Of a stretch of 64,000 nucleotides of DNA, positions 35,850 to 38,847 are shown piece by piece. The DNA lies in contig OZ059897.1 in NCBI GenBank assembly GCA_964057225.1, forward strand, positions 14,756,001 through 14,820,000, in the 5' to 3' direction. The notes under the pieces are model-generated. The model made no database searches and was not told where the DNA came from. It saw only the letters and a list, made by a program, of their open reading frames with translations. Within the stretch, counting starts at the first letter, position 1. Every line of letters begins with the position of its first letter. The DNA is from Auanema rhodensis (Eukaryota > Animalia > Nematoda). A program made the position numbers and the translations under genes.

Positions 35850-38847
35850 ATGGATCGGGGGCGGCTACCTGATGAAGAAGATGCTGATCTTTACAGTGGT
35901 CCTGATGGTGGGCGAGGTCCAGGCTATATGCCAGCTGGACCATCAGAAAGATGGTTAGACGGTATCAAGGTAATATTTTAAAATAATTAAATTCTTTTGA
36001 AAAAGAATTTAATATTTGCCTTTAATAATGTTTGTTGTTTAGTATCGAGTAGGTGACTGTGTTCAGTATCGAGGAGAAGCTTGTAGGCAATTTCTATCTG
36101 GAAGGATGATAATGATGACAAGTGAAAGCCGTGAAGACATGTATGACATTGGTAAGATTAAAAGATGGAACTGAGGATTATCATAAATAAATATTTTAAG
36201 ATCGTAACTTACGTGCTGCCACTATGTTTATTGACAGTTCAGCTTCTATATCCCAACAATGCCGACAGATTTCACAAGCTGTTGCTTGTTTCCATATGTA
36301 TAAGGTTTGTTTTCTTCTAAAAATAATGAAATTAAATAAGAATTAATCCAATTGTTCACAACAGAACAACCGTTCAATGCTTATTTTCAACTAAAAATAA
36401 AAAGTTTATGCTAATTTTGGCGTCATTCCAGGTTTGCAACAACAGTTCTGCTCCAATCAAACAACCTTTAGCTATTTGTAAAAAAGATTGTGAACTTATT
36501 CAGGTAATTTATATAATTATATTTAATTTATTATAATTAATTATTTTAGAAAGAAATCTGTCCTTCTGAACTTGCTTTAGCAGCAGAGCATGATCTTGTC
36601 GGTGATGGTCCCAAAGCCTTATTCCCTTCTTGTCCAACACTTCCTATATCAAATAATTGCATTCCAATCATCGATGCTCAAAGATCTCAAGTAAGTTTTC
36701 GTATAATTTCGCAATTCTTGTTTATTTTTGTTTATAAATAGTGATATTGATTTTTTATTTTTGTATTTTAGATGTCTACATCATCTGAAACCCCACGTGG
36801 TCATTTGACACATTGGTGTTATGTTAATACTGGAGTTAAGTATGAAGGTGCTGTTTCAACAACTATGACAGGAAAAACATGTCTGGATTGGTCGGAAAGC
36901 ACATCAAGGTAGTTTTTCCCTTTATGCTTCCTCTTATATTTAATTTTTTTTGTAGAGAATTCAACATTGATAGATATCCTGAACTCCGATATTCCAAAAA
37001 CTACTGTCGAAATCCTGGTGGTAAGAAGACACGTCCTTGGTGTTTCTCTCAGCCACTTGGACAGGAAGAGTATTGTGATGTAAGCTTTAATTCAATTTTT
37101 TTAAAATTTACTTTTGATTTTTCAGGTGAAGCAATGTCCAAAGGAAATGTATCCTCATTTAGCTGAGTCTCCCAGAGATAACTCTCCATCAGCTTCTGAT
37201 ACGCTTTCAAACATGTGGGATAACATGTCTTCACAGTGGCAACTTGCTGTTGTTGGAGGTGGTGTGTTCCTCTTCTTACTTCTGATTCTGTTACTCTGCT
37301 GTGCTTGTTGTTGTCGAAGCAAAAAAAAGAATAAAGGAAGGCATATGGGTGGTGGACATCAGAATCATCACATGTCTGCTCCACCAAGTATTGTTAATAG
37401 TGCTGGAAACTCGACATACTATCGGAAACTCAATGGAACTTCTACTCCCATATTGGGAAGAGGAGGTGCTGGACCAATGGAAATGACTTCGCTTCTTCCC
37501 GGAAACCAACTTGGAATACCCCCACCATATGGAGATCCTCCATTTCGAGCACCACCTGAGATTCCAGTTCAAGAACCCTATCATATTCTAGAGATCCCTA
37601 GTAGTCAAGTAAGAATATCCAGATATTCCCATTAAGCTGATTGTCCCTTTATAGTTGAAAGTTTGTGATTTGGTTGGAGAAGGCCAATTTGGTATCGTTC
37701 ACACTGGATTATGGACTGGCGGACTGATTAGCGGAGAACCTCTGCAAGTTGCTATTAAAACTTGTCGACCTGATGCCACAAATGCGGAAAAAGCTAGTCT
37801 CGAAGAGGAAGTTAGAACTGTCGCTTCCTTTGATCATCCACATGTTATTCGATTACTAGGTATGCAATCCTTTAACCTTTAATTATGAGAAGTTATTGCT
37901 TTTCAGGCGTTTGTTATATGGATGGAGGAAGACTATCAGCTGTATTCGAGTATATGGTTCATGGCGATCTTCATGATTTCCTTCGACTTCGTGCTCCAGC
38001 TTCTCTAGAAGACATTGATAGAATTAATGGCGATAGTGATGATTTCATGAGAATCGCTACACAAATTGCATATGGAATGGAATATCTGTCGTCGATGAAT
38101 TATGTTCATCGTGATTTGGCTACCAGAAACTGTCTTGTTGGTGATAGTCGTGTTATCAAGATAGCAGATTTTGGCCTAATGAGAGCTTGTTATGACAACG
38201 ATTACTACAAGGTATGGTGATTTCTGATCATTTCGGATGTTGATTTTCAATTTTTCAGATGTTACATCGCTCATGGATGCCTGTTAGATGGATGTCAAAG
38301 GAAGCTTTGGAACAAGGCCGGTTTAGCCAAGCTTCAGATGTGTGGTCGTTTGGTGTAACTCTTTGGGAGATTTGGAGTTATGGTCGCCAACCCTACGAAG
38401 GAGCTACAAATCAACAAGTGAGTTCTCATAACATCTTGAAACTGTGATACTAATGATTGGCATTTATAGGTTATTGAACTGATTGCTGGACGACATCTGT
38501 TGGAATGTCCTCATGGATGTCCGACGAATATTTACAGTTTAATGGTTGAATGTTGGCACGAGCATCCGGAACGGCGTCCAACTTTCTCGGAAATTCACAG
38601 TAGATTGCAGTCTTGGTCTCTAGCCAGTCCCAGTCATTCAATTCTTCACCCACAAAAAAATTCGAACAGTAGCCAAAGTGGTTCAAGTCTTTCTGGCGCA
38701 GGCCGCGGAGGACTTCCCCAGAAGCCATTGGCCACAATGACCAGAGCCGCTTACCCACCCCGGGGAGGTCGAAGGACAGAAGATGCCAGTCCCTTGATGG
38801 GAAGAGAAGCTAATTATGCATATAGTGAGGACGGTGATTCTTATTAG
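35850..38847 (+). CDS. cam-1: Second ROR/CAM-1 gene lacking the Ig domain (CRD - kringle - TM - kinase)
   Basis: TTTCAG acceptor at 35826-35831, in-frame TAA at 35844-35846, then ATG at 35850 ([25 protein letters not shown]). All downstream exons, splice sites and the stop are intact. Confidence 0.85.

Follow-up and report, generated by a model that had tools for sequence, protein, structure and literature searches.

The window analysed here, a stretch of 64,000 nt in all, carries two copies of cam-1, and the second of these (copy 2, 35267-39520) is probably an old partial tandem duplicate of the first whose body has been kept alike by repeated interlocus gene conversion. Self-BLAST of the window returned a single long repeat, 24837-28503 against 35850-39515, with 98.9% identity over 3671 columns, the two units lying on the same strand 11 kb apart. 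The first base of the repeat belongs to an internal ATG, which stands 3 nt inside the copy 1 exon next after the Ig and linker exons; the repeat ends 668 nt past the stop codon. Within the 181-Mb genome the segment is present in these two copies only, and whole-genome DNA and protein searches recovered two copies each of the cam-1 exon and of the kinase exon. No third donor copy was found in these searches, and a third copy as the source was rejected on the grounds that the genome-wide results comprised just the two known copies.

Layout of the two cam-1 copies

The features of copy 1 and of the DNA between the copies are as follows:

17098-17178, + strand: first coding exon of copy 1, located by tblastn with the Haemonchus (96%) and C. 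elegans (62%) CAM-1 N-termini
24312-24785, + strand: Ig-domain and linker exons of copy 1, with the counterpart absent upstream of copy 2 (Pfam I-set/Ig_3, tblastn)
24834-24956, + strand: copy 1 exon with the conserved MDRGRLP methionine (splice sites, alignment to nematode CAM-1 proteins)
24837-28503, + strand: the duplicated segment as it stands in copy 1, bounded by the internal ATG and the 3' end of the 3'UTR (self-BLAST, base-by-base alignment)
28504-35849, no strand: unique 7.3-kb spacer between the copies (tblastx, sensitive blastn, whole-genome DNA searches, repeat scan)

Copy 1 is a full ROR-family receptor tyrosine kinase, the orthologue of cam-1, as shown by Pfam searches of its individual exons and by tblastn matches that are colinear with nematode CAM-1 proteins. 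Its parts follow in the order first exon, Ig exons, cysteine-rich domain, Kringle, transmembrane segment and kinase, with the stop near 27831. Pfam searches of single exons matched I-set/Ig_3, Kringle and PK_Tyr_Ser-Thr; the Fz part gave no match in single-exon Pfam scans and was covered by colinear tblastn to CAM-1 orthologues bearing PF01392. A 7-kb intron lies directly 3' of the first coding exon, and the intron before the MDRGRLP exon is just 48 nt long. The first coding exon shares 96% identity over 27 residues with the trichostrongylid CAM-1 N-terminus, compared with a gene average of about 61%, and the acidic N-terminus that it encodes is unlike a signal peptide.

Between the spacer and the DNA that follows copy 2, tblastx and word-7 blastn returned low-complexity matches only, and whole-genome DNA searches gave no homology. 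Using tblastx and word-7 blastn, we likewise found no old colinear homology past the 3' boundary (again low-complexity matches only) and no remnants of the Ig exons in the spacer upstream of copy 2. Transposon-mediated capture was considered as an origin of copy 2 and rejected, given the absence of terminal repeats and a spacer that is unique in the genome and contains no transposon.

Copy 2 and its parts are listed below:

35267-35358, + strand: non-coding 5' exon of copy 2, spliced to 35832 (RNA contigs of two runs, sequence)
35832-35969, + strand: first coding exon of copy 2 (RNA joints, sequence, ORF walk)
35850-35921, + strand: diverged 72 nt, codons 1-24, with 20 substitutions of which 14 are synonymous and 6 replacement (alignment, independent DNA contig)
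35922-37880, + strand: older part of the homogenised tract, with 15 substitutions, about 1.87% at neutral sites (alignment, counts, strain contigs)
37881-39515, + strand: most recently homogenised part, with 1 substitution, about 0.10% at neutral sites, including the stop codon and the whole 3'UTR (alignment, counts)
39501-39506, + strand: AATGAA variant of the poly(A) signal (sequence, RNA contig ends)

Copy 2 is an intact, transcribed gene with its own 5'UTR exon. RNA contigs from two runs join 35358 to 35832 over a GT..AG intron, and with an in-frame TAA just before it, at 35844-35846, the ATG at 35850 is the start codon. From there the coding frame continues through 12 coding exons and 778 intact codons to the stop at 38845-38847. 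Spliced contigs from the two transcript-like runs contain 12 GT..AG introns in total. Six exonic sites tell the copies apart, and at every one of them the transcript contig has the copy-2 allele. The encoded protein retains the cysteine-rich domain, Kringle, transmembrane and kinase parts and is without the Ig domain.

Several further properties of the copy 2 transcript were observed. The 5'UTR exon contains an upstream ORF of 7 codons (35284-35307) that ends in TAG. For RNA runs X10 and X11 (35832-39520), the word depth was ~22-25 for the copy-2-specific 5' contig and ~39 for the shared body, and the body contig held copy-2 alleles only; the Ig-less copy may be the more abundant transcript in the X10/X11 sample, though contig depth is an unreliable guide to expression. 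The RNA contigs stop at 39507 and 39520, shortly past the AATGAA signal, and the last homologous base of the two copies, 39515, is no more than ~5 nt away from the apparent poly(A) site (39501-39520 / 28489-28508). Given this position, usable homology could perhaps always have been confined to the transcribed unit.

The canonical 22-nt SL1 leader has ~3,450 occurrences across the 181-Mb genome, which for a nematode is an unusually high count of SL1 genes. On contig C3 (about 6741531-6766485, and from 14134320 onward) the 22-mer forms long tandem arrays, the repeat period being ~252 nt or ~341 nt.

Uneven divergence along the repeat

Positions 35850-35921 and 24837-24908 align without gaps and differ by 20 substitutions, the last at 35919, beyond which 143 bases are identical and the next difference falls at 36063. 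This places 20 of the 36 substitutions in 2% of the length, a clustering that cannot be due to chance. The original prediction had held that 20 of 72 nt differ in the first 24 codons, that RGRLP is recoded at all five of its codons and that RVPDSAGGA has become SGPDGGRGP in copy 2, all of which can be read directly from the base-by-base alignment. With 14 synonymous differences at 17.5 synonymous sites (pS 0.80, pN 0.11, Nei-Gojobori), codons 1-24 are saturated, past correction. In codons 1-15 all eight changes are synonymous (P about 5e-6 under neutrality) and the peptide is unchanged, which shows long purifying selection on the peptide; together with the pS of 0.80 this supports the further claim that copy 2 has been under long-term purifying selection. 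The VPDxA(A/G)G motif that follows the acidic stretch in nearly every nematode CAM-1 retrieved is kept in copy 1 and lost in copy 2.

Orthologous bases from C. elegans, C. briggsae and Diploscapter provided a yardstick for this divergence. Within the 72 nt there are 20 differences between the two copies, 19 between copy 1 and C. elegans cam-1, and 20 between the two Caenorhabditis species. In the 48 nt that follow, the copies are identical, whereas copy 1 differs from Caenorhabditis at 17-19 positions. A search with C. elegans CAM-1 recovered one gene per species in ~45 nematodes, the nearest CAM-1 being ~61% identical, that is, no close relative. Since cam-1 is apparently single-copy in these ~45 sampled species, the duplication is lineage-specific, with an age that we infer from just 17.5 synonymous sites. 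Searching 1.84 billion protein representatives with the 40-aa exon gave 8 matches, all of the copy-1 type (RVPD-like) and none with a copy-2-type 5' end, and exact look-ups of the ORFs of both exons returned no match.

The recoded 5' end also has pairing potential. The G5 run that recoding created in codons 3-4 is complementary to a C6 run of the copy 2 5'UTR, and the two could pair as a GC stem of 5 bp whose loop contains the AUG (35839-35862). In this DNA of 33% GC such runs are rare, and four synonymous changes built the G5 run. As a consequence of this potential, the recoding may have been partly selected and not clock-like. The overall RNA fold of the recoded 5' end was no better than that of shuffled sequences (z 0.77).

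The remainder of the repeat, 35922-39515 (3,594 nt), differs from copy 1 by 16 substitutions and three one-base indels, and the identity halts abruptly at 28503/39515. The predicted identity of ~99% over 3.6 kb stood, introns included; its extension into 3' flank did not, the DNA in question being 3'UTR and the homology ending at 39515. Codons 25-778 have a dS of 0.012 and a dN of 0 (Nei-Gojobori), and all six coding substitutions in the tract are synonymous (P about 1e-4), indicating that both copies are functional and still under selection. The 11 introns of the tract (661 nt) hold 10 substitutions and the 668-nt 3'UTR none; as introns and 3'UTR are homogenised too, the identity is not due to selection. 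Neutral divergence is uneven, at 1.87% in 35922-37880 versus 0.10% in 37881-39515 (Fisher 6.6e-5), and the final 941 nt up to the 3' boundary are free of substitutions. Two levels of divergence make the tract a mosaic.

Assembly check and strain differences

Contigs of public runs from other studies were placed on 35000-40000, these being assembled contigs and not phased reads. DNA run X6 has a depth of 11-19 in the unique flanks and ~36 in the shared tract, and DNA run X9 has 246-313 in the flanks and roughly double in the tract. An X6 contig covering 35566-35949 at single-copy depth, with zero differences, takes in unique upstream DNA, the diverged 72 nt and the beginning of the shared sequence, and contigs from the 3' flank of each copy reach the tract at 39515. 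Junction contigs at 1x and a tract at ~2x in independent DNA runs demonstrate that the duplication is real. Collapse or polishing error, which the original prediction had named as able to refute it, is excluded along with false duplication: the tract is genuine and there are two real loci. An artefact of this kind behind the near-identical tract or the junction is extremely improbable. In its favour, the three indels lie in or beside short base runs, and at the homopolymer at 39001 both other strains have the copy-1 length in all contigs, a difference that may be an assembly error and is the sole such suspect. Against it, runs of other studies reproduce the 35566-35949 junction at 1x, both 3' junctions and the 2x tract, and RNA contigs splice the copy 2 5'UTR exon onto the gene.

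The same contigs revealed differences among strains within the tract. In X6 one contig of 1680 nt at 2x depth spans 36200-37879, so the copies are identical there in X6; over the same interval the reference copies are 13 substitutions and 2 indels apart. The X6 alleles are of the reference copy-1 type at 36561 and 36681 and of the copy-2 type elsewhere in 36200-37879, and an adjoining double-depth contig has the copy-1 allele at 36063. X9 retains the difference at 36919/36934, whereas at 37622, 37636 and 38574 both of its copies show the copy-1 allele. No differences were found in ~1.3 kb of unique flank in either X6 or X9. Variants are therefore moving between the loci faster than the flanks mutate, a signature of ongoing interlocus gene conversion. 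The position of the boundary is stable across the three strains. Some high-depth X6 contigs match only from 36200, 36310, 36751 or 38226 onward, with unrelated sequence before, and produce depth spikes of 80-120, probably reflecting AT-rich words in common with repeats elsewhere.

Origin of the pattern and known systems

The saturated 72 nt, the spacer without homology, the mosaic tract and the strain-variable sites all favour concerted evolution over a recent simple duplication, as had been predicted. An old partial tandem duplication would have given rise to a copy 2 that begins at the internal methionine, under a promoter of its own and with a separate 5'UTR exon. Since then, recurrent non-reciprocal copying from one locus to the other would have homogenised exons, short introns and 3'UTR (35922-39515). 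The first 72 nt, at the edge of the homology and without a homologous anchor on the far side, would have escaped conversion and drifted to synonymous saturation under protein-level constraint. An edge diverged by ~28% would block heteroduplex formation, so that later tracts would all end there and a cliff would result. The 3' edge is perhaps equally sharp because the escaped zone there would be non-coding and no longer recognisable. We infer such edge escape and self-sharpening; the clean last 941 nt are not predicted by a simple edge-escape model, and the 3.6-kb tract is longer than the 2,958 bp maximum for C. elegans pairs (PMC3966223). To account for the mosaic and for the differences among strains, more than one event is needed.

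A single recent large replacement, by which the body of an old, diverged Ig-less paralog was overwritten once and minor exchanges occurred afterwards, is unlikely. Such an event would account for two razor-sharp boundaries, for divergence without a gradient toward the cliff, for the lack of substitutions next to the 3' boundary and for a tract longer than typical nematode conversion tracts. One example route is a broken end in exon 1 that invades copy 1, copies 3.6 kb and is rejoined through microhomology at the poly(A) site; however, the invasion needs homology in an exon that had already diverged. The two significantly different divergence levels within the tract also speak against a single event, and the copy-distinguishing sites vary by strain, so that more than one event is needed anyway. 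Very unlikely is a recent partial duplication of 24837-28503 followed by rapid recoding of the first 72 nt, with no old paralog, whether through selection for a new N-terminus or start-codon hairpin or through a mutation cluster at the breakpoint. It fits homology that runs exactly from the ATG to the poly(A) site, a possible stem around the AUG between the 5'UTR C6 run and the recoded G5 run, and the rewriting in copy 2 of the pan-nematode VPDxAAG motif. Nevertheless, changes that are synonymous in eight of eight cases in codons 1-15 (P 5e-6) are unlike a mutation cluster, and 14 synonymous changes at 17.5 sites contrast with 6 at the 500 synonymous sites next to them. Any recent tandem duplication should moreover have left homology in the spacer, and as none is present a recent tandem event is ruled out; a recent insertional copy would need to have landed in frame behind a pre-existing homologous 72 nt.

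Within the preferred reading of an old duplicate with a conversion-homogenised body, the cliff might be held by selection, copy 2 needing a private 5' end (the rewritten VPDxAAG and the start-codon stem with C6) and tracts that cross it being eliminated. We regard this as doubtful. If true, it would constitute a natural 'firewall', in which a split-off isoform keeps a private N-terminus and translation control and shares its 750-residue body through conversion. The pair also provides a warning for dating in this genome, since a whole-gene dS would be 0.012 for a pair with a saturated unconverted end.

Partial homogenisation of tandem paralogs has long been known, and the cam-1 pair reveals no new mechanism. 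Conversion-homogenised paralogs in Caenorhabditis include col-12/col-13, hsp-16 and the actins, with conversion extending through introns (PMC3966223), and a genome-wide survey was made by Semple and Wolfe (1999, as cited in PMC3966223). Like pairs of the col-12/col-13 type, the cam-1 copies are direct tandem paralogs with conversion through short introns, and in both cases the flanks are fully diverged, the ORF and intron of the Caenorhabditis pairs being ~99.5% identical (PMC3966223). The cam-1 pair differs from col-12/col-13 in its longer tract, 3.6 kb across 11 introns, and in having one boundary inside a coding exon, where the old divergence thus remains readable. The age of col-12/col-13 is confirmed by orthologues, whereas that of the cam-1 pair is estimated from its own synonymous sites. 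The strain-variable cam-1 sites resemble the situation in fog-2/ftr-1, for which exchanges are polymorphic among natural isolates (PMC3966223). With old divergence legible in a conserved coding stretch and strains that differ at converted sites, the pair offers a clean teaching and testing case of partial concerted evolution. Its boundary can be compared with Walsh's 'terminator mutations', by which divergence past the identity required for recombination blocks further tracts and yields a stable boundary (cited in PMC3966223). Walsh's model is theoretical; at cam-1 the position of the boundary and its stability across three strains are observed, and its cause would be as the model describes.

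The structure of copy 2 also has a counterpart in C. elegans, where cam-1c is an isoform without exons 1-4 that has its own regulatory elements (PMC2920835). Exon 5 of C. elegans cam-1 opens ATG ATG GAT, the same methionine as the start of copy 2. Copy 2 resembles cam-1c in starting at the conserved MDRGRLP methionine (the presumed cam-1c start) and in being without the Ig domain. In C. elegans, however, cam-1c is an isoform of a single gene, whereas copy 2 is a gene in its own right that has a 5'UTR exon to itself, and the corresponding intron of copy 1 measures just 48 nt. Judged by these sequence features, copy 2 is the cam-1c form turned into a separate gene, an isoform of a conserved Wnt co-receptor that would have acquired a locus of its own.
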